A stretch of 64,000 nucleotides of DNA from positions 14,136,001 through 14,200,000 of the forward strand of contig CM106586.1 in assembly GCA_048013815.1 (NCBI GenBank), in the 5' to 3' direction. The notes below the pieces were generated by a model. That model did not search any database and had not been told where the DNA came from. It saw only the letters and a list, made by a program, of their open reading frames with translations. Positions 16,905 through 56,880 of the stretch are shown here, piece after piece. How positions within the stretch are numbered: position 1 is the stretch's first letter; the number at the start of each line of letters is the position of its first letter. Origin of the DNA: Setoptus koraiensis. Its lineage: Eukaryota; Animalia; Arthropoda. Made by a program: the position numbers and the translations under genes.

Positions 16905-18206
16905 TCAGTCGTTAATGTTTTGTGAACTCATTAATTTTTTGAGCAGACTAGCATTATATTGAGGATCTTTACCAACGGCCTTCATGGTTGCCGGTATCGA
17001 TGCAGTTTGTTTAGCGACCGAGGCAGCGTCTGTAGAATCATCATCGCCACCACTAATCAAGATGATTTCGTCAATCTTATTCAATGGCGCAGCAAGCTCG
17101 GCGGCTATTTTGGGTATGGCTATCAGCAAGTTCGACAGAATAGCTGCATCTCCAAACTTCTTATGACATTCGGCCTTCAACTTCATGCCCTGCGCCTCGG
17201 CCATACCAAGCATCTCACTGGCGGCAGCCTCAGCTGCGCCGATGATTTTCATTCGCCCTGCCTCGGCCTCTGCAGCAATACGTACCTCTTGGGCACAGGC
17301 CTCGGCATTCTTCTCTATGGCATAGGCCTCGGCTTTGGCCGGAAGAGTGACGTCCATTTCGAATTGTTTTTCTTGGCGCGAACATTCCTCTTTTTCGATA
17401 TCTATTTGTCCGTCAATTCTAATCTCTTCAACCTTCAACTCTTCTTGGCGAATAGTCTTTTGTGTTTTGGCCCATTGTAGATTATAAGCAAGTTTAGCCT
17501 CTGCCTTCTTTTTGCCCACCTCATTATCAAACTCCGCGCGCTTCAAAGAAGTGGCATGATTAAATCCCTCGACAGCTGTGTCCTTTTCGTATTTCTTTTG
17601 CAGTATCTCCTTGTCACAAGAGGATTCCTCTCGGATGGCCTCACCCTCTGCTTTGGCGACATGCATGGCGGCTTCGCACTTCACTCTGGCCGTGCTTTTT
17701 TTGCCCAGTGAGCTCAGATATTCAACATTGTCACTAATATCCTTTATTGTGAGACTCATTATATCAATGCCCATCCTGGTGAGATCAGTGGCAGCAGCCT
17801 CGCGTATGAGTCCAGCAAAGATTTGTCTTTGCTTATAGATGGCCTCTACTGTTTGTGTTCCTATAACGGCTCTCATGTGGCCCTCAAGAGTGTGCAAAAT
17901 AACCGACTTAATATGATCGATGTTCTTGCCCAAAAATTGTTCCGCGGCCAATGGCAAGAATTCATCATTGGACATTATTTTACAATGAACAACACCTGTC
18001 ACCGTTATGGGAACACCATGAGTTGTTTCAACGTGCTCACATTTTGGCGTCAATGTCATTATTTGTAGCGAGATCTTTTGAATGTTCGTCAGCATCCAAC
18101 AGCTCCAGCACCAGCCACCGACAACTATTTTCTTTTTGGACGAACCGAAGCATCCGCCTGACACTATTAGCGCCTCGTTGGGACCTACAGTGTGGATATT
18201 CCCCAT
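16905..18206 (-). CDS. Flot2: Flotillin-2 (reggie-1), intronless
   Basis: 433 aa; MGNIHTVGPNEALIVSGGC start typical of FLOT2; SPFH domain and Ala/Glu-rich flotillin repeats. Confidence 0.95.
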   Translation of the reverse strand: MGNIHTVGPNEALIVSGGCFGSSKKKIVVGGWCWSCWMLTNIQKISLQIMTLTPKCEHVETTHGVPITVTGVVHCKIMSNDEFLPLAAEQFLGKNIDHIKSVILHTLEGHMRAVIGTQTVEAIYKQRQIFAGLIREAAATDLTRMGIDIMSLTIKDISDNVEYLSSLGKKSTARVKCEAAMHVAKAEGEAIREESSCDKEILQKKYEKDTAVEGFNHATSLKRAEFDNEVGKKKAEAKLAYNLQWAKTQKTIRQEELKVEEIRIDGQIDIEKEECSRQEKQFEMDVTLPAKAEAYAIEKNAEACAQEVRIAAEAEAGRMKIIGAAEAAASEMLGMAEAQGMKLKAECHKKFGDAAILSNLLIAIPKIAAELAAPLNKIDEIILISGGDDDSTDAASVAKQTASIPATMKAVGKDPQYNASLLKKLMSSQNIND

Positions 18207-18879
18207 GTTGTTGGATGGTTAAGATGTTGTTAACACGCTATTATAATACGATAACAATAAATATATAGATGGCGGATAATTTCTGTTTTGACTGGAGTTG
18301 AATTGTCCGGTTATGATTGACTAGATATGATTATTATGCGTATATTCTTGACTAATAGGGATGCACAAAAACCACTGATTACGCGTTATAGTAAAAACAT
18401 TTGTGAAACGCTCTAGATCACAGCGTTGGTCGCTGGCCCCATAATCTTCGAACCTTTTGGGCACTCTCACACGCTCTTCGCCCCACTGCGTTTTAGCAAT
18501 GGAGGAGACACGCCAGAGATGGGCGAACATCGCTGCATGGGGTCTCGTTTCGAACGCGCACACCAGATAATATAACGCCCGCAGAAACAACAGCAACAAC
18601 TTTGCATTGTCTCTATCTTCGGAAACCACCGGAAGGTGGAGCAAGAGACAACGCGATGTTCAGAAGGCCACCAACCTATCGGTCAAAAATGAAGTTACTT
18701 CAGGATTCACCAATTCTGACAAACCAATATTGTCAGCTGTTCTTTTTGTTGTTGCATCAACGATGCAATGCGTCATAGAAACCAGACGAATTGGATCTCA
18801 CAAGCCACCCACCATATCCACTATAATATCGCTTAAAACACTCCAATAAAGATATTATTCTAGTTACCGGATCTCTAAA

Positions 18880-20457
18880 ATGTATGGCGAAGAGAATGTT
18901 TTCTTCAATGATGGTCCACTAGCTAAAGATTGGCAATATCATGATTATGGCAATGAGAATTGGTTGAGCTTTCAATCAATCAGGAAGCGACACAATGAAA
19001 ATATTTGCCATGAAACCAATAAATTATTACTCAGGTTAGACAGGCTCATCAATGAGGCGCCACATTCTAATGCGGACGGTGGAGAACATGGTAAGGTACA
19101 AATGAGAGACCACGAACGTTCAGTGGTCGACTGGACATCTGATGATATTGTAAAATTGTGTCCATTTTGTGCTAAATCTTTCACACTGTCTCGGCGACGC
19201 CACCACTGTCGCCTATGCGGAGCTGTCATGTGTCATGGTTGCTCGTTGTTTCTGGAATACGAGGCAGCTTGTAAACTTATTAAGCCAACTAACTTAGAAG
19301 CACAACAAGACGGTGATACTACAAGGCAATCGGCATCGAATGAACAACTGAACAAATTAACTGCAAATACCTATAACGATACAACATCTAATCGAGCTTC
19401 AAATGGTGCCAACAACAAAAGTTTTACTGAATCAATCCTGTCTCCATTCAAGAGATCATCCTCTAAACTGAATGACAGTGCAAGGAGCAATGATTCCAGA
19501 CCCTCTTTGTTATCGAACGCAATAGGCCTTCTCCAATCACAAAATCGCAGGGGATCTCAGACTAGCTTATTGACATTTATCAATACAGCAAACAACTCGT
19601 CGAGTCAGAATGATCCACAACTGTCTAAGATCAGACTGTGCGAAGATTGCAAACGTCTTTTGGACAAACGATTACAATCTATAGAGGATCATTACTATCA
19701 TCCATTCTTTTGTGATTTTTACGAAAAATTGCGCTCTCGGACAACCTCAGCTGATGAGCTTCTAGCAACTTACGATAAAATGTGTCAGTCATTAAACATA
19801 GGCGAAGAGAATTACAAAATACAGGATGCACAAGAATTGAGAGCAAAACTGGACACACTTAAAAACAACATAGCTCATATGGCCAAGAATATTACCACGC
19901 TTGCTTCTACTAGCAATGAAAAAGAAGTACAGCTTGTAACAGCTATACGGCAATCAATTGGATTTTGGGTGAAAAAGTATGAGTCCTTGGCAGCATATCC
20001 GACCGAGGAAGAATATGAAGAATTAAAGCTCAAGCGCCGCCAGCAAATTGAAGAGCAACTGTCAATGAACAAGTCAAACGTGGCATATGGCAATGAAAGC
20101 ACATTAGGGGATCGTGTCAATTCGGAAAGCAGTAGCCCTCGTCCCGAAAAGCGGGGTCTAATGGGTCTACCCAGATCAGGTAATTCTAGAGGTATGAAGC
20201 GTTCAATCACTATGGGTGACAGTTTCAATGCAAACAATAGTGCTTGGATGCCGAACCAATCCATGCTTGATACCGAGGAAGCAAATCCTTTATTGATACA
20301 AATTAGAAATCTAGAAGAGTATATAAAACAGGCCAGAAATGCCAATCGTTATGAGGAGGTGTCAACTCTGGAAGTGAACCTTCGAGATCTGGAGATAGAG
20401 TTTCTAATCCAACAAGGTGACTCTGTACATCTAGATGACTCAACAACTGACGACTAA
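18880..20457 (+). CDS. Rbsn-5: Rabenosyn-5 (FYVE Rab5 effector), intronless
   Basis: 525 aa; ETNKLLLRLDRL, FYVE motifs WTSDD...CPFC...RRRHHCRLCG...RLCEDC, coiled coil, C-terminal Rab-binding hairpin NPLLIQIRNLEEYIKQARNANRYEEVSTLEVNLRDL. Confidence 0.92.
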   Translation: MYGEENVFFNDGPLAKDWQYHDYGNENWLSFQSIRKRHNENICHETNKLLLRLDRLINEAPHSNADGGEHGKVQMRDHERSVVDWTSDDIVKLCPFCAKSFTLSRRRHHCRLCGAVMCHGCSLFLEYEAACKLIKPTNLEAQQDGDTTRQSASNEQLNKLTANTYNDTTSNRASNGANNKSFTESILSPFKRSSSKLNDSARSNDSRPSLLSNAIGLLQSQNRRGSQTSLLTFINTANNSSSQNDPQLSKIRLCEDCKRLLDKRLQSIEDHYYHPFFCDFYEKLRSRTTSADELLATYDKMCQSLNIGEENYKIQDAQELRAKLDTLKNNIAHMAKNITTLASTSNEKEVQLVTAIRQSIGFWVKKYESLAAYPTEEEYEELKLKRRQQIEEQLSMNKSNVAYGNESTLGDRVNSESSSPRPEKRGLMGLPRSGNSRGMKRSITMGDSFNANNSAWMPNQSMLDTEEANPLLIQIRNLEEYIKQARNANRYEEVSTLEVNLRDLEIEFLIQQGDSVHLDDSTTDD

Positions 20458-25717: not shown

Positions 25718-26329
25718 TCATGTCCTTGCACTGTCATTCAGTTTAGAGGATGATCTCTTGAATGGAGACAGGATTGATTCAGTAAAACTTTTGTTGTTGG
25801 CACCATTTGAAGCTCGATTAGATGTTGTATCGTTATAGGTATTTGCAGTTAATTTGTTCAGTTGTTCATTCGATGCCGATTGCCTTGTAGTATCACCGTC
25901 CTGTTGTGCTTCTAAGTTAGTTGGCTTAATAAGTTTACAAGCTGCCTCGTATTCCAGAAACAACGAGCAACCATGACACATGACAGCTCCGCACAGGCGA
26001 CAGTGGTGGCGTCGCCGAGACAGTGTGAAAGATTTAGCACAAAATGGACACAATTTTACAATATCATCAGATGTCCAGTCGACCACTGAACGTTCGTGGT
26101 CTCTCATTTGTACCTTACCATGTTCTCCACCGTCCGCATTAGAATGAGGCGCCTCATTGATGAGCCTGTCTAACCTGAGTAATAATTTATTGGTTTCATG
26201 GCAAATATTTTCATTGTGTCGCTTCCTGATTGATTGAAAGCTCAACCAATTCTCATTGCCATAATCATGATATTGCCAATCTTTAGCTAGTGGACCATCA
26301 TTGAAGAAAACATTCTCTTCGCCATACAT
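25718..26329 (-). pseudogene. Rbsn-5: Duplicate 5' part of rabenosyn-5 within the fold-back copy
   Basis: Protein identical to residues 1-202 of the 18880 copy, then frameshifted. Confidence 0.85.
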
Positions 26330-27002
26330 TTTAGAGATCCGGTAACTAGAATAATATCTTTATTGGAGTGTTTTAAGCGATATAATAGTGGATATGGTGG
26401 GTGGCTTGTGAGATCCAATTCGTCTGGTTTCTATGACGCATTGCATCGTTGATGCAACAACAAAAAGAACAGCTGACAATATTGGTTTGTCAGAATTGGT
26501 GAATCCTGAAGTAACTTCATTTTTGACCGATAGGTTGGTGGCCTTCTGAACATCGCGTTGTCTCTTGCTCCACCTTCCGGTGGTTTCCGAAGATAGAGAC
26601 AATGCAAAGTTGTTGCTGTTGTTTCTGCGGGCGTTATATTATCTGGTGTGCGCGTTCGAAACGAGACCCCATGCAGCGATGTTCGCCCATCTCTGGCGTG
26701 TCTCCTCCATTGCTAAAACGCAGTGGGGCGAAGAGCGTGTGAGAGTGCCCAAAAGGTTCGAAGATTATGGGGCCAGCGACCAACGCTGTGATCTAGAGCG
26801 TTTCACAAATGTTTTTACTATAACGCGTAATCAGTGGTTTTTGTGCATCCCTATTAGTCAAGAATATACGCATAATAATCATATCTAGTCAATCATAACC
26901 GGACAATTCAACTCCAGTCAAAACAGAAATTATCCGCCATCTATATATTTATTGTTATCGTATTATAATAGCGTGTTAACAACATCTTAACCATCCAACA
27001 AC

Positions 27003-27368
27003 ATGGGGAATATCCACACTGTAGGTCCCAACGAGGCGCTAATAGTGTCAGGCGGATGCTTCGGTTCGTCCAAAAAGAAAATAGTTGTCGGTGGCTGGTG
27101 CTGGAGCTGTTGGATGCTGACGAACATTCAAAAGATCTCGCTACAAATAATGACATTGACGCCAAAATGTGAGCACGTTGAAACAACTCATGGTGTTCCC
27201 ATAACGGTGACAGGTGTTGTTCATTGTAAAATAATGTCCAATGATGAATTCTTGCCATTGGCCGCGGAACAATTTTTGGGCAAGAACATCGATCATATTA
27301 AGTCGGTTATTTTGCACACTCTTGAGGGCCACATGAGAGCCGTTATAGGAACACAAACAGTAGAGGCC
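27003..27368 (+). pseudogene. Flot2: Duplicate 5' part of flotillin-2 within the fold-back copy, cut by the gap
   Basis: Identical translation to the first 122 aa of the 18206 copy. Confidence 0.85.
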
Positions 27369-27868
27369 NNNNNNNNNNNNNNNNNNNNNNNNNNNNNNNN
27401 NNNNNNNNNNNNNNNNNNNNNNNNNNNNNNNNNNNNNNNNNNNNNNNNNNNNNNNNNNNNNNNNNNNNNNNNNNNNNNNNNNNNNNNNNNNNNNNNNNNN
27501 NNNNNNNNNNNNNNNNNNNNNNNNNNNNNNNNNNNNNNNNNNNNNNNNNNNNNNNNNNNNNNNNNNNNNNNNNNNNNNNNNNNNNNNNNNNNNNNNNNNN
27601 NNNNNNNNNNNNNNNNNNNNNNNNNNNNNNNNNNNNNNNNNNNNNNNNNNNNNNNNNNNNNNNNNNNNNNNNNNNNNNNNNNNNNNNNNNNNNNNNNNNN
27701 NNNNNNNNNNNNNNNNNNNNNNNNNNNNNNNNNNNNNNNNNNNNNNNNNNNNNNNNNNNNNNNNNNNNNNNNNNNNNNNNNNNNNNNNNNNNNNNNNNNN
27801 NNNNNNNNNNNNNNNNNNNNNNNNNNNNNNNNNNNNNNNNNNNNNNNNNNNNNNNNNNNNNNNNNNNN
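27369..27868. other. Scaffold gap (500 N)
   Basis: Exactly 500 N. Confidence 0.99.
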
Positions 27869-28017
27869 GCATCTCTGCATATTTCCTTTGTCCATGTTTC
27901 GGGTTCTGAGCTATCAACTGGGGAGCTACCATCTTCTGACGAAGTATTGGCTCTATCGGAAAACAATCCAATGCAGACCAGAAGGGCGAATAATAAAGTT
28001 TTAATCAAATGCTTCAT
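27869..28017 (-). CDS. N-terminus of a putative secreted protein, cut by the gap
   Basis: MKHLIKTLLFALLVCIGLFSDRANT has signal-peptide architecture, followed by an acidic Ser-rich stretch. Confidence 0.5.
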
Positions 28018-51600: not shown

Positions 51601-53752
51601 GGTCAGAAACAAAGTTTAGCGCCAGTTTAAAACTATAACCTCGGTGGGGCGCGCAAACAGCCAGCGCATTTGCTTGAGCATGTCGCTGGCAAGCTAGCTG
51701 GCCAGCGACATGGCCCCAATGGCCACACAATGGTTATAGCCAAACTGACTAAACCAAACAAAGCTAAACAAAATCGCGCCCCCGCGCTTCATTGTTGTGC
51801 CCGCAACTTGCCGCAGAGCGGACAAGAGATGGCAGTTTTCTGATCCTGTAACTAAGCGCACCTTCACTTTGCCAGCGCCGGCCCGCCTAATGGGGCCCCG
51901 GCCCCGCTCAGCCGACAAACTACAAACTGGCCCACTGCTGGCCGATATTTAAGTGCCGCCCGTCTCAGTGTGCCCTCAGTTAACCACTAAGAGGTCGCAC
52001 CATTTTAGTGGTCAGTTTTACTGGTCCTCTGACTACTCTCGCCCGAGACTCGCCGCTCTACTCGCGGTCTCGAGAGTCTTGTGGCTCTCGTGGGTCTCGT
52101 GGGTCTTGGGGTCTTGGGGGTCTCGCGAGTGAAACTAGTCACATGTTTCGGTCTGCTTAATGGTCTTATTGTATAGGATTACTTCGTACCGGTCACCGGT
52201 GTGTCCGTGTGCAATATTATTGATTCGCATTGATCGACTCGGGACACAACACTTGTGCGCCCGATGATCGGATCTTAATAATAAGCAAAGAGGCCACTTG
52301 CCCCACAAAAACACCAGACTCCCCCCCCCCATTTGGCGAGAACAACCGGTCGCTCAATTAAATCCGACAAACCGCCCAAACAATAGCGTTATTTGGGCCG
52401 CATTTGGGGGCACTTAACAGAAGAGGCTCACAACTGTTGGCCGAGATTCTCGCAGTTTTTCAGCAATTTTTGTGTTGCAAAAAAAAAGTTTACTTTAAAT
52501 CCATTTAAGCTGGGATAAAGATATTTTCTTACCACAGCCGGTCAGAAATATTAGTAAAGTAAATATTTTCTTTCGGTCCTAAACGCAACTATTTCGGACT
52601 GTTTCCTTTAAAATGTAGCAGCTCTGAGCAGCTCTGGAATCCAATCCGTTCTCCCAGAATATGAAGTATACATTGCTTCTGGCCTTTGTTCGAAAGATTT
52701 CGTTTGTTGGCCTCGTTTTCTAAAGTTGTGAGAATCAGGTGAATCACAAGATATTTGTAAGAATTGTGAATATTTGTGTATTTGTAAGAATGGTTTATCG
52801 GTATAAATTTTCATGACCATTTTACGGGAGACGTGTACATTGAATCAGCAGGACAACCACTGTTGACAAGTTATCATGCAGTGGCAGTTTATTTGATTGA
52901 CTCATTGGTATTCTTTGTTGACTGCTCCGCTGTCACTTGTCGCTCGTGCATAATATACTGCTAATTATATTACGTCACTTCAGTGTACAAGCTCCTGTTT
53001 GTGCCGAAATGATCATCAGCAAATGAACAATGTTTCAGCTTGAAACAAAGCTCATAGTTTTACTATTGTTCTAATCGTGTGATATAAGCGCAACCGGAAG
53101 CGCTTTAATATAGTCAGCACAACAATAAGATAGTGCGCAACAATGGTCGACGAATGATAATGACGTAACAAGGGATAGATTTTTGGTGCGCCACACAAAA
53201 TGTGTGGGCCTTGTTGTTGGGTATATCCATCAATATGATTGTACCTGTTTATTGTTTGCCGATTGTTCCAGTGAAACATATATTATCTCTTACACTTGAG
53301 GATAGGGATTACTTGGAGACTGCACTGAGTACAATTCAATCATATCAATAAATTATCCCGTTTTGTCACAAAAGCTGTAACTGATTTATGTTGTATAATG
53401 ATAAATACTATCCATTGTAAGTATAATGCAGCTGGCACTAAAATATGCATTCATGACGAAGTGTCAGAAATTTGCTCGAAACAATCGTCAACAATGTGCC
53501 ATCAATGTCAACAAAAATCACTGATGCATGGGGTTTTACGCAATAAAGACAAAAGATACACACATATTTACTATGGAGAAAGTGGTGGACTAATGAACAG
53601 CATGATAATTAGTGCTATTACGAGCTCAAATTGTTGTTTATAAACAGTGACGATGAAAGAGAGTTCAGTACAGGTAATCAGTTAATTACTGCTACTATTT
53701 GTACTGATTGATATCAATCTAGCTTTGCTCTGCTAAACTGGCGCATTCCAGG

Positions 53753-53790
53753 TATATAAGGCGAATGGTTATTGTCATCCGACATCAGAT
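53753..53790 (+). promoter_or_regulatory. TATA box plus Inr-like element of the Gly/Met-rich gene
   Basis: TATATAA at 53753-53759, TCAGA about 31 nt downstream, ATG at 53911. Confidence 0.65.
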
Positions 53791-53910
53791 CACAAAACAA
53801 GTCATATCAAGCAAGTGACAACTTAAATAGAATTCAATCAAAACATAAAACCAAATCAATTTCCACATTTCATAAAAATCAATCAGCTTCTATCAAACTA
53901 TCGATTCAAC

Positions 53911-54679
53911 ATGTATAAGATTTTCATCGTTATTGCAGCTTGTGCCGCCGTTGCTTCGTGCCGTAAGTATTCTATTTGAACATCTCTGAGAAAAAGGTAA
54001 TCTCAATGAGAACAAGAGATTGAAATATCTCATTGTAACTAACATTTATTCTCTCTCCCTCTCTCTCCCTCTAAACGACAAATCAGGTCCAGGAGGCGAA
54101 GAAGGAAGCTGTCCTATGAGCAGGATGGGCGGACAAAGCGGTCAGATGGGGGGCCCAGGCGGCCAGATGGGAGGACCAGGCGGTCAGATGGGCGGTAGCC
54201 AAGGTGGTCAAATGGGAGGACCAGGCGGCCAGATGGGAGGACAAAACGGTCAGATGGGAGGACCAGGCGGTCAAATGGGAGGACAAGGAATGATGGGCGG
54301 TAGCCAAGGTGGTCAAATGGGAGGACCAGGTGGTCAAATGGGAGGACAAAACGGTCAAATGGGAGGACCAGGCGGTCAGATGGGAGGACAAAACGGTCAA
54401 ATGGGAGGACCAGGCGGTCAGATGGGAGGACAAAACGGTCAGATGGGAGGACCAGGTGGTCAAATGGGAGGACAAGGAATGATGGGCGGTAGCCAAGGTG
54501 GTCAAATGGGAGGACCAGGCGGCCAGATGGGAGGACAAGGAATGATGGGCGGCAGCCAAGGTGGTCAGATGGGAGGACCAGGCGGTCAAATGGGAGGACA
54601 AAACGGTCAGATGGGAGGACCAGGAATGATGGGCGGTAACCAAGGTGGTCAAATGGGAGGACCAGGCGGCCGAATGTGA
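53911..54679 (+). CDS. Secreted Gly/Met/Gln tandem-repeat protein, 214 aa (exons 53911-53962, 54087-54679)
   Basis: Signal peptide MYKIFIVIAACAAVASC; phase-1 GTAAGT...CAG intron; then RPGGEEGSCPMSR and (GGQMGGP/GGQMGGQNGQMGGP/GGQMGGQGMMGGSQ)n; AATAAA at 54981. Confidence 0.9.
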
Positions 54680-55628
54680 TGTCTAGGAACCCATAAGAAA
54701 ACTTTGGTTGAGTTGGGTGACAAAAAAAACTGGATAACTTCAAGTGGATTTGATCATCAACAATTAGTAAATGTTGCCTAGAGAGAAACAAGTATACTAG
54801 TAAAAAGATGAGATTTTCATGTCAATTCAACATCATATAAATGTAATTGATAAAAGAAAATTGTCATTAATAGCATGAGGAGTTTTGATGAAAAAATCGC
54901 TTGCGCACGCGAAAACCTCAGTGGGACATCATCATAGATTGTGCTTCGTTAACTTTTTGTCATAGCTGACTCAATTGTAAAATAAAAAACCACAAAAAAA
55001 GATTATACAACATTATGACCATCATAACTGTCTTCAGGTGACATTAGTTCATGAGCAAATCATCGGGACAAAACAGAAATGAACATATCGCGCGATATCG
55101 GTTTTGAGTTTCCCCTTGCCAGTGGCGTGGTTGTTGTTTGGTCAGGGTTGGCTAATCTCGTCTCGGAAACAAGATAAAATAAAAAACAGCTTAAGTGTAT
55201 ACCTGTGAGAGTACATTTGAAAAAGGAAATTCGCCCAGCTATGTAGGCCATTTCGACTTTTGGCCAACTTTTGCACCATGGCAACGTGCACCATTGCAAC
55301 GATTGCATTGTTCGAATGGAGTGCACCGGAAATGACCGGATTCATCAAGCAGTCATCAGTGTGGCAGATAATAATTTATCCCAACCAACTGTAACTGCGG
55401 TGAGCAGCTTATCTGTGGCCCGTTCTAAACGTTCCCGAATTTCAGATAGAATCTTATCTATTTTGTGCCTGGTAAATAGACCGAAATAGATACAATTGAG
55501 TGCAGCCGATAAGAGTGCCAGTGAAGTGGTGGCTCAGTGTAGATCATTGAGACAAGCCTGACAGGCCGGTGACATAAAATGTCGTTGCAAGTCGACAGCA
55601 CATTACATAACACTGAGAGAACATCGCC

Positions 55629-55728: not shown

Positions 55729-56880
55729 AGCCTATCGATGGAGCTGTCACGAGGACCTATTAGACAATCGTCTGGCAATGACGTGGATAACAACTTGGAT
55801 GGCTGCGCAATTGCACATTTTTCACATTGCTTCACATGGGGATTATTGGCGATTGTAGCCGGCCCATATTATGCAATTGCCTAATTGTGTGTCGCCGAGA
55901 GAAGTGACGAAAAGTCACAGTGACAATGCGCCAAAGTTTATCCCATCACACACAAAAGTCGCCCTGCTCATGGCCTCAAAAAGCCCACAAACCCCAAAGA
56001 GCCCGCGAACCGCGCAAAGCCCACAAAGCCCGCTAACCTCACAAATCCCGTAGGCCCCGCCGTACCCTGCACGGGGCCCGATGCGCGCACTAAGGCCGGC
56101 CCATAAGTGTGCTGACGTGCTTACATGACGCTCCGACGCGCCCAATATTATTAAGAGAGCGCCGGGCACCAAATTGGCCCGACAACAATTAAGTTTGCGC
56201 GCACAATTGCTCGGATGTATATGTGACGATTTGTGATTAGAATATTGATCATCACGCTCGAGCGCTCGACCGGGCCCCGGCTGCGACAATGAGCAGCGTA
56301 ATAGCGCACCAACAACAACAACAGCAACAACGACAGCAACAACAATGATTAACATGACTAAATGACTCACGACTATCACTGTTCGTGACAAAGCAAACAA
56401 TTGTTGATGTTGTTTGCATAATGAGGGCGCCCGACTGCACAATTTCATATCACAGCACAGTGAGGCTCAGTGAGGCACAGTGGGGCCCAATAATGGCGCG
56501 TAATCACGGCGACTCGCCGCTTGTCGCTAGAATATTGTCGGGCATAGGGGTTTGTGTGGCTAATAAAATTAATGACGACGCACCGGATTGTTTTGTTGTC
56601 GCGAATTTGCCGAATTTCCAGTTTAACTGTTATTGTGCCGTCGTGTCACAGCGAGCGGTCAGCGGCGCAGCGCTAATTTCACCTCTTTGAAACACTGATT
56701 GGGCGGCGACAATTTGACAATTTGCCAACGAGCCAATTGTGACAATCGGCCAATTGTGACCATTCGCCAATCGCCGATTGTGTGTCGACCAATTGGCCGC
56801 GGCCGACAATTGAACAATTGGCGCCAGTCGGCCGGGCCGCGGGCCCCCACCAAAGCCGTTCGAGAGCGGCCCGATTGGAT

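Follow-up and report, generated by a model that had tools for sequence, protein, structure and literature searches.

A putative secreted Gly-Gln-Met repeat protein of the mite Setoptus koraiensis as a candidate extracellular material

A predicted two-exon gene and its repetitive product

We analyzed a stretch of 64,000 nt from contig CM106586.1 of the mite Setoptus koraiensis (assembly GCA_048013815.1, positions 14,136,001 to 14,200,000 of the forward strand). This whole stretch is referred to as the window, and all positions are those of the window unless another sequence is named. Between 53753 and 54986, the window carries a predicted gene of two exons, the first encoding a signal peptide and the second a chain of short repeats composed mainly of Gly, Gln, and Met (the Gly-Gln-Met repeat gene). 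Its product is a candidate for a secreted material that associates with itself outside the body. The following features were assigned to the gene.

53753 to 53759, forward strand: TATA box TATATAA, read directly from the sequence, 34 nt 5′ of the A in the initiator-like (Inr-like) TCAGA
53785 to 53910, forward strand: Inr-like site CATCAGATC at 53785, then a putative 5′ leader of about 124 nt; the transcription start is predicted
53911 to 53962, forward strand: coding part of exon 1, comprising the signal peptide MYKIFIVIAACAAVASC (17 codons) and the first base of an Arg codon, ending in phase 1
53963 to 54086, forward strand: phase-1 intron of 124 nt predicted from the sequence; donor GTAAGT, branch site CTAAC (54039), a tract rich in C and T, and acceptor CAG
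54087 to 54679, forward strand: exon 2, 593 nt, closing with TGA
54087 to 54123, forward strand: unique head of the mature protein, (R)PGGEEGSCPMSR, holding Cys25 and the sole acidic residues
54124 to 54671, forward strand: repeat array of about 25 units, each a core G(Q/M)MGG with a linker (PG, QN, Q, SQG, or NQG), delimited with Tandem Repeats Finder (TRF) and a unit list
54677 to 54679, forward strand: stop codon TGA, preceded by ...GGPGGRM
54680 to 54986, forward strand: putative 3′ untranslated region (UTR) up to the first AATAAA after the stop (54981-54986); the poly(A) site is predicted

The AT-rich leader contains no upstream ATG, and the start codon at 53911 stands in the context caacATGt. 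If the frame of exon 1 is continued into the intron, a stop codon is reached after 5 codons, so that the two exons can be joined only by splicing. The resulting coding sequence of 645 nt is free of stops and frameshifts. A preliminary description of this DNA had claimed a complete transcription unit, consisting of TATA box, Inr-like site, signal exon, one intron, repeat exon, and AATAAA, and every one of these elements is present in the sequence. The same description had placed the unit on an AT-rich island between two gene deserts. The profile of guanine-plus-cytosine (GC) content agrees with this: the island (52.5-55.25 kb) has a GC content of 0.31-0.39, with the array inside it reaching 0.53-0.56, and its flanks (0.5-0.6) are unique in the genome and devoid of credible open reading frames (ORFs).

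A second AG, in frame and 6 nt 3′ of the proposed acceptor (54091-54092), forms a tandem acceptor of the NAGNNNNAG type. Judging from the sequence, its use could give rise to a minor isoform that is two residues shorter and starts its mature head without Pro-Gly.

The N-terminal leader is hydrophobic (mean Kyte-Doolittle hydropathy of 3.0 for residues 4-15) and has an AXA site. Length and composition of the protein were counted on exons 1 and 2 joined computationally, whereas the exons were used separately in database searches. The mature chain of about 197 residues consists of Gly (49.2%), Gln (17.8%), Met (16.2%), Pro (7.1%), Ser (3.6%), and Asn (3.0%). The rest consists of Arg (three), Glu (two), and Cys (one, or two after cleavage at AVA-SC), and the intact protein would measure about 17 kDa. 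Two Glu, two Arg, and 1-2 Cys lie in the 13-residue head. Absent from the mature chain are Ala, Lys, Asp, His, Thr, Leu, Ile, Val, Phe, Tyr, and Trp. The chain contains 32 Met and 35 Gln; 12 of the 14 Pro occur within Gly-Pro-Gly, and GPGGQ occurs 10 times. Exon 2 has a net charge of 0 and no N-glycosylation sequon. In the array, TRF detected a 21-nt period (25.9 copies) and a 147-nt super-period (3.7 copies), and the modules GGQMGGQNGQMGGP, GGQMGGQGMMGGSQ, and free GGQMGGP were counted five, three, and six times, respectively.

Composition and module numbers are thus as the preliminary description had stated them (a chain of about half Gly built from hierarchical modules), and the claimed lack of Ala, Lys, and aromatic residues was borne out by the counts. 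Its single Cys near the N-terminus depends on the cleavage site. The claim stands if C17 is removed with the leader, but not if cleavage is of the AXA type (AVA-SC), which would leave both C17 and C25. Cleavage could take place after A15, S16, or C17. The disulfide dimer proposed earlier is weakened as well, since an additional Cys, located at the cleavage site, could close a loop within the molecule instead.

Structure prediction with AlphaFold2 without an alignment returned a mean predicted local distance difference test (pLDDT) value of 50, a predicted template modelling score (pTM) of 0.12, and no secondary structure; the chain is predicted to be intrinsically disordered. From the Gly (0.495) and Pro (0.071) fractions, a 2P+G value of 0.64 was obtained, which reportedly lies in the Pro/Gly range of hydrated, elastomeric rather than amyloid chains.

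Evidence for a coding gene and search for relatives

As the length of an ORF is uninformative as evidence in this array, two tests that do not depend on length were applied. For the coding-constraint test, the 16 canonical 21-nt units were compared pairwise in each of the six frames. These units represent 9 different DNA types but only 2 peptide types in the proposed frame. Three columns that separate the P-G from the Q-N units were perfectly linked. The variable columns that occur sporadically were synonymous third codon positions in five out of five cases (hypergeometric p = 0.001, or 0.0025 without the three linked columns). Likewise, the ratio of nonsynonymous to synonymous differences (pN/pS) was lowest in the proposed frame, with 0.34 vs. 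0.59-0.97 in the other five. The synonymous variation between repeats that had been claimed at the outset is now quantified by these values.

For the second test, both strands of the window (128 kb) were scanned for candidate signal exons, defined as a frame that begins with ATG, has a basic residue close to its start, contains an 11-residue stretch with at least 10 of 11 hydrophobic residues, and stays open into a GTAAGT donor. A single match was obtained, and this was exon 1 of the Gly-Gln-Met repeat gene; 40 composition-preserving shuffles yielded 0.025 matches per window. The probability that chance would place such an exon 124 nt 5′ of the array, on the correct strand and in the correct phase, is estimated to be of the order of 1e-5. 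Codon use was also compared: GGG makes up 1 of the 97 Gly codons, and CAA has a share of 0.69 among Gln codons (0.74 in neighboring genes); this is consistent with a coding gene, but weakly so, because the repeats share ancestry. Based on sequence, we regard the gene model as well supported, the gene as likely to be real and translated, and secretion of its protein as probable.

RNA data were also consulted. Six raw RNA runs were linked to the sequence through a species label only. Four of them, each from a different study, prepared by poly(A)/oligo-dT and comprising about 11 million reads, contained zero reads on positions 53500-55200 (1,701 letters); the presence of the mite in these runs is not established. 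Their species label may be that of a host or a generic one, because four independent large poly(A) studies within one year are improbable for a minute mite. Four contig runs, guessed to be RNA, contained 15-21% of the sampled words, a share about the size of the unique parts of the UTRs and a hint only. No junction-spanning ORF fragments were found in RNA contigs when the first 60 residues of exon 2 served as the query. We infer transcription and splicing of the gene from the DNA sequence.

Genome searches with the repeat itself, the 3′ UTR, and the 5′ region found one copy of each. A Pfam scan of the protein with E values up to 10 returned no family, hence neither a chitin-binding or other cuticular domain nor the N- or C-terminal domains of spidroins. 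An exhaustive phmmer search of 1.84 billion protein representatives yielded 108 matches, none of them below 1e-30, and a word search with exon 2 among 5.8 billion clusters returned one protein (P0001), the N-terminus of a Brahma protein. The 12 short, most identical phmmer matches and P0001 were inspected and were all unrelated low-complexity proteins; the remaining phmmer matches, including the long top ones (22-37% identity), fit the low-complexity pattern by score, identity, and length only. No match was obtained in a sequence search of the PDB, no relative in a scan of Joint Genome Institute (JGI) metagenomes, nothing usable in a feature search of the ESM Atlas, no Rfam match over the window, and nothing relevant in a literature search for the repeat motif. 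The initial impression that the motif matches no recognized protein therefore holds for Pfam, the word searches, phmmer, the PDB, and the literature, none of which yielded a characterized family. On sequence grounds, the gene is a single-copy, lineage-restricted orphan.

The Brahma match deserves separate mention. P0001 (L013, 499-1008; Logan SRR32924702) and a further protein, P0152, are N-termini of Brahma/BRG1-type ATPases of other organisms, in which GGQMGGP or NQMGGP heptads precede the QLQ domain directly. Compared as DNA, the array and P0001 are only 73-78% alike, with different synonymous codons (GGT-GGT-CCA vs. GGA-GGA-CCA). A copy of the repeat from the head of a Brahma gene was ruled out, since the synonymous codons differ and no such head occurs in this genome. 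The heptad shared by Brahma heads and the mite gene thus appears to result from convergence, not common descent.

Three other orphan genes on the same chromosome also encode repetitive proteins of this general kind. These comprise (i) a signal-peptide protein with GGLGGLQGALGNLGG repeats of the Gly/Leu/Gln type (L011, 1965-3013, reverse strand); (ii) a secreted-looking Gly/Met/Gln protein with segments of the MGQMQGNMGG type (L011, 4534-5499, reverse strand); and (iii) a secreted-looking (Met-Asn-Gly)n protein (L009, 1774-2424, forward strand). Membership of these genes in one family was ruled out, as composition is common to them but neither the array gene nor the three among each other show sequence homology. 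Judged by sequence, secreted low-complexity proteins rich in Met and Gly seem to form a compositional class in this mite.

Comparison with known systems and possible function

Among known proteins, abductin offers a close analogy. It forms the random-coil rubber of the molluscan hinge ligament and is composed of a short head with Cys and, after it, repeats rich in Gly and Met (PMC13052691). Both abductin and, by prediction, the mite protein are secreted random coils with a Cys head, Gly/Met-rich repeats of short period, about half Gly, and Met in the mid-teens of percent. The two differ in their units, the abductin consensus being GGFGGMGGGX with Phe, whereas the mite unit is a heptad of G(Q/M)MGG plus linker without any aromatic residue. 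They also differ in their heads: that of abductin has two conserved Cys and a cross-linking Tyr, while the mite head has 1-2 Cys and no Tyr. Abductin contains very little Pro. The mite chain contains 18% Gln and 7% Pro in Gly-Pro-Gly, with Pro in every second unit, and comes from another phylum; the phmmer search revealed no homology to abductin, all matches inspected being unrelated low-complexity proteins. The GPGGX and GPGQQ modules of spider flagelliform and MaSp2 silks provide a second parallel, in that the mite chain has GPGGQ 10 times and is Gly/Pro/Gln-rich and non-crystalline; the motif is short and no evidence of descent. In contrast to spidroins, the mite protein lacks terminal domains, poly-Ala, and Tyr, measures about 200 residues instead of thousands, and carries Met in every unit. 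By analogy, its resemblance to abductin would be convergent, and the protein may work like abductin and GPGGX silk modules while being a member of neither group.

Arthropod glycine-rich proteins (GRPs) are defined as a class by at least 20% Gly; in ticks they include cement, cuticle-like, elastin-like, and glue-like classes, and some phase-separate into adhesives (PMC11772090). The mite protein fits the compositional definition with 49% Gly, a predicted signal peptide, and a disordered repetitive chain. Tick classes, however, are set by GGY, GYG, or collagen-like GXX motifs and coacervate via aromatic and cationic residues, neither of which holds for the mite protein: its array has a period of 7 residues and hence no Gly-X-Y register, and no Tyr and hence no GGY or GYG. 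The protein can be regarded as a variant of the known secreted arthropod glycine-rich repeat proteins with an unusual grammar that is free of aromatic residues and charge and based on Met.

In another plant-feeding acariform mite, Tetranychus urticae, the secreted repetitive salivary proteins Fibroin-1, sFibroin-1, Fibroin-2, and GARP serve in fixation of the mouthparts during feeding and in silk coating (PMC12534534). The likeness lies in secretion, repetition, and low complexity. The Tetranychus proteins are Val/Asn/Ser-rich, bear RQAQA repeats, or are Gly/Ala-rich, whereas the Gly-Gln-Met protein contains neither Ala nor Val, and the searches revealed no homology. Eriophyoid mites produce a proteinaceous silk or adhesive in anal glands (PMC13027148). 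The prion-like low-complexity domains of yeast Pbp1/ataxin-2 and the C-terminal domain of TDP-43 are likewise poor in aromatic residues and rich in Met and Gln/Gly, but they belong to larger intracellular RNA-binding proteins, whereas the mite protein would be secreted and consist of repeats on its own. In yeast, the Met-rich domain of Pbp1 self-associates via Met, and H2O2 reverses this association (PMC8394241).

Composition and analogy suggest a possible silk, glue, or elastomer. Given a real gene, we lean slightly towards a role as extracellular material or adhesive. The fuller reading, namely an orphan, gland-secreted, self-associating extracellular material protein convergent with abductin and GPGGX silks, is put forward tentatively, at somewhat less than an even chance. 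According to this reading, the TATA/Inr core promoter would drive a short mRNA whose first exon codes solely for the cleavable signal peptide. After removal of the phase-1 intron, the second exon would provide the 13-residue head and the array of some 25 heptad-like units, each G(Q/M)MGG followed by a linker of 1-3 residues. Large amounts of the protein would come from a secretory gland, whether a salivary gland, an anal 'silk' gland, or an accessory gland of the reproductive system, and would be laid down outside the body, where the hydrated, flexible, self-associating chain could serve as a glue or sealant or else as an entropic elastomer. Weak 'stickers' may be provided by the flexible side chains of Met and the amide groups of Gln, Gly and Pro (in Gly-Pro-Gly turns) would keep the chain out of amyloid, and the N-terminal Cys would permit an intramolecular loop or a tail-to-tail dimer. 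If the 32 Met were oxidized to sulfoxide, the chain would become far more polar and the assembly looser; this redox idea, already raised in the preliminary description, has a precedent, by analogy, in Met-rich low-complexity domains melted by H2O2. That the gene encodes a main component of the eriophyoid proteinaceous silk or adhesive, from anal or salivary glands, seems doubtful.

Several points weigh against the fuller reading. Tyr, Lys, His, and multiple Cys, which commonly serve for cross-linking, are missing, so the chain alone cannot build a covalent network. Association could then occur non-covalently via Met and Gln, through a disulfide of the head, by a transglutaminase joining the 35 Gln to Lys of a partner, or with the help of prolyl hydroxylation in Gly-Pro-Gly. 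All six frames of the array are open, and ORF length alone is meaningless. The criteria of the signal-exon scan were fixed after the sequence had been viewed. If the four poly(A) runs truly represent this mite, their zero reads speak against expression in those samples. Finally, sequence searches found no orthologue in other species, with very thin database data for eriophyoids; the absence of relatives carries limited weight because few eriophyoid sequences are available and contigs from short reads end within repeats of this kind. The open frames, the lack of reads (if the runs contain the mite), and the lack of an orthologue or a paralogue would also suit a non-functional locus with little or no expression, namely a coding-looking minisatellite that is either an ORF of very young or de novo origin or a gene now silenced, as would the isolation of the gene between ORF-less flanks. 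Nevertheless, we judge such a locus somewhat unlikely. Sporadic variation is limited to synonymous third positions, the signal-peptide exon is unique in the window and in the correct phase, no defect is seen in the signals for promoter, splicing, branch point, or poly(A), and the frame is uninterrupted along its entire coding length. The RNA result, moreover, is no test as long as the presence of the mite in the runs is not established.

Other functions can be envisaged for a secreted product. A salivary effector could expose its 32 Met as a sacrificial sink for the oxidative burst of the plant, or its disordered chain could disturb cell-wall or apoplast signaling. Signal peptide and orphan status are as expected for effectors of herbivores, and in Aculops lycopersici more than half of the predicted secretome is lineage-specific (PMC7738191). 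Furthermore, Met constitutes 16% of an unstructured chain and would be fully solvent-exposed, and it is readily oxidized by H2O2 (PMC8394241). There is, however, no link between the gene and salivary glands, and a single small protein would be an inefficient stoichiometric scavenger without an extracellular reductase. With its strict period of seven residues and its Gly/Pro grammar, the chain resembles a material more than a scavenger. We regard this function as unlikely. We consider it quite unlikely that the protein is instead a matrix component of integument or eggshell, that is, a glycine-rich cuticular or chorion protein from epidermis or follicle cells and not a deposited gland secretion. 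Glycine-rich proteins are common in arthropod cuticle and cuticle-like GRPs abundant in ticks (PMC11772090), and the signal peptide, TATA promoter, and compact gene would fit. But the chain offers neither Tyr nor His nor Lys for sclerotization and contains no GGY/GYG motifs, the Pfam scan revealed no chitin-binding or other cuticular domain, and the gene is single copy, whereas cuticular GRPs usually occur in families. Very improbable is a precursor of small bioactive or antimicrobial Gly-rich peptides as in chelicerates: a signal peptide does precede a Gly-rich chain, but the array lacks dibasic or other processing sites, the net charge of the chain is 0, its repeats contain no aromatic or cationic residues, and the end (GGRM-stop) offers no C-terminal amidation signal.

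Eriophyoid mites are major crop pests and virus vectors, and their attachment, feeding, gluing of eggs and spermatophores, and, in some species, silk spinning are molecularly uncharacterized; no eriophyoid silk or adhesive gene has been identified so far, and no silk proteome exists (PMC13027148). If the gene did encode a main component of the eriophyoid silk or adhesive, this would be a new kind of animal biopolymer that derives cohesion from Met and Gln and not from aromatic, charged, or beta-sheet-forming residues. Such a Met/Gln biopolymer would be convergent with molluscan abductin, and oxidation could toggle it between a cohesive and a soluble state. A compact gene of about 200 codons for a heptad polymer of Gly, Gln, and Met without charge or aromatic residues would also be a simple, easily expressed test case, both for the way Met 'stickers' build extracellular materials and for an independent origin of Gly/Met elastomers in molluscs and mites. 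If salivary, the gene would be a candidate target for RNA interference; if silent, it would be an instructive minisatellite bearing every hallmark of a gene.

Neighboring genes and the remaining window

Long ORFs elsewhere in the window encode Med23, flotillin-2, a rabenosyn-5-like FYVE protein, an aquaporin, MCMBP, and a lipoate-protein ligase, and the organism is an intron-poor metazoan. The Gly-Gln-Met repeat gene lies in the interval that separates MCMBP from the block of aquaporin and flotillin. The nearest named relative of the flotillin is that of Fragariocoptes setiger (Eriophyoidea), with 59% identity, compared with 50-56% for spiders, scorpions, and other mites; to one metagenome contig it is 85% identical. 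By sequence similarity, the neighboring genes place the genome with the eriophyoid (gall or rust) mites, and its 48.8 Mb in two contigs are in keeping with this.

The flotillin-2 gene, with its ORF at 16905-18203, and the rabenosyn-5-like gene form a divergent pair (16905-20457), and a mirror-image partial duplicate of this pair was found at 25718-28004. Between the copies, flotillin is 100% identical in its first 121 residues and rabenosyn 99% identical in its first 202, which points to a very recent duplication. The duplicated flotillin fragment continues into an ORF of 333 amino acids (27003-28004).

Between 38000 and 52500 and between 55300 and 60000, the window consists of stretches of 5-14 kb with a GC content of 0.5-0.6 that are unique in the genome and contain neither credible ORFs nor Pfam matches. 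ORF-less stretches of this length are unusual in so compact a genome; they may be regulatory DNA, loci of non-coding RNA, or decayed genes. Microsatellite-like motifs of about 40 bp near 56300 and 58010 were found again genome-wide.

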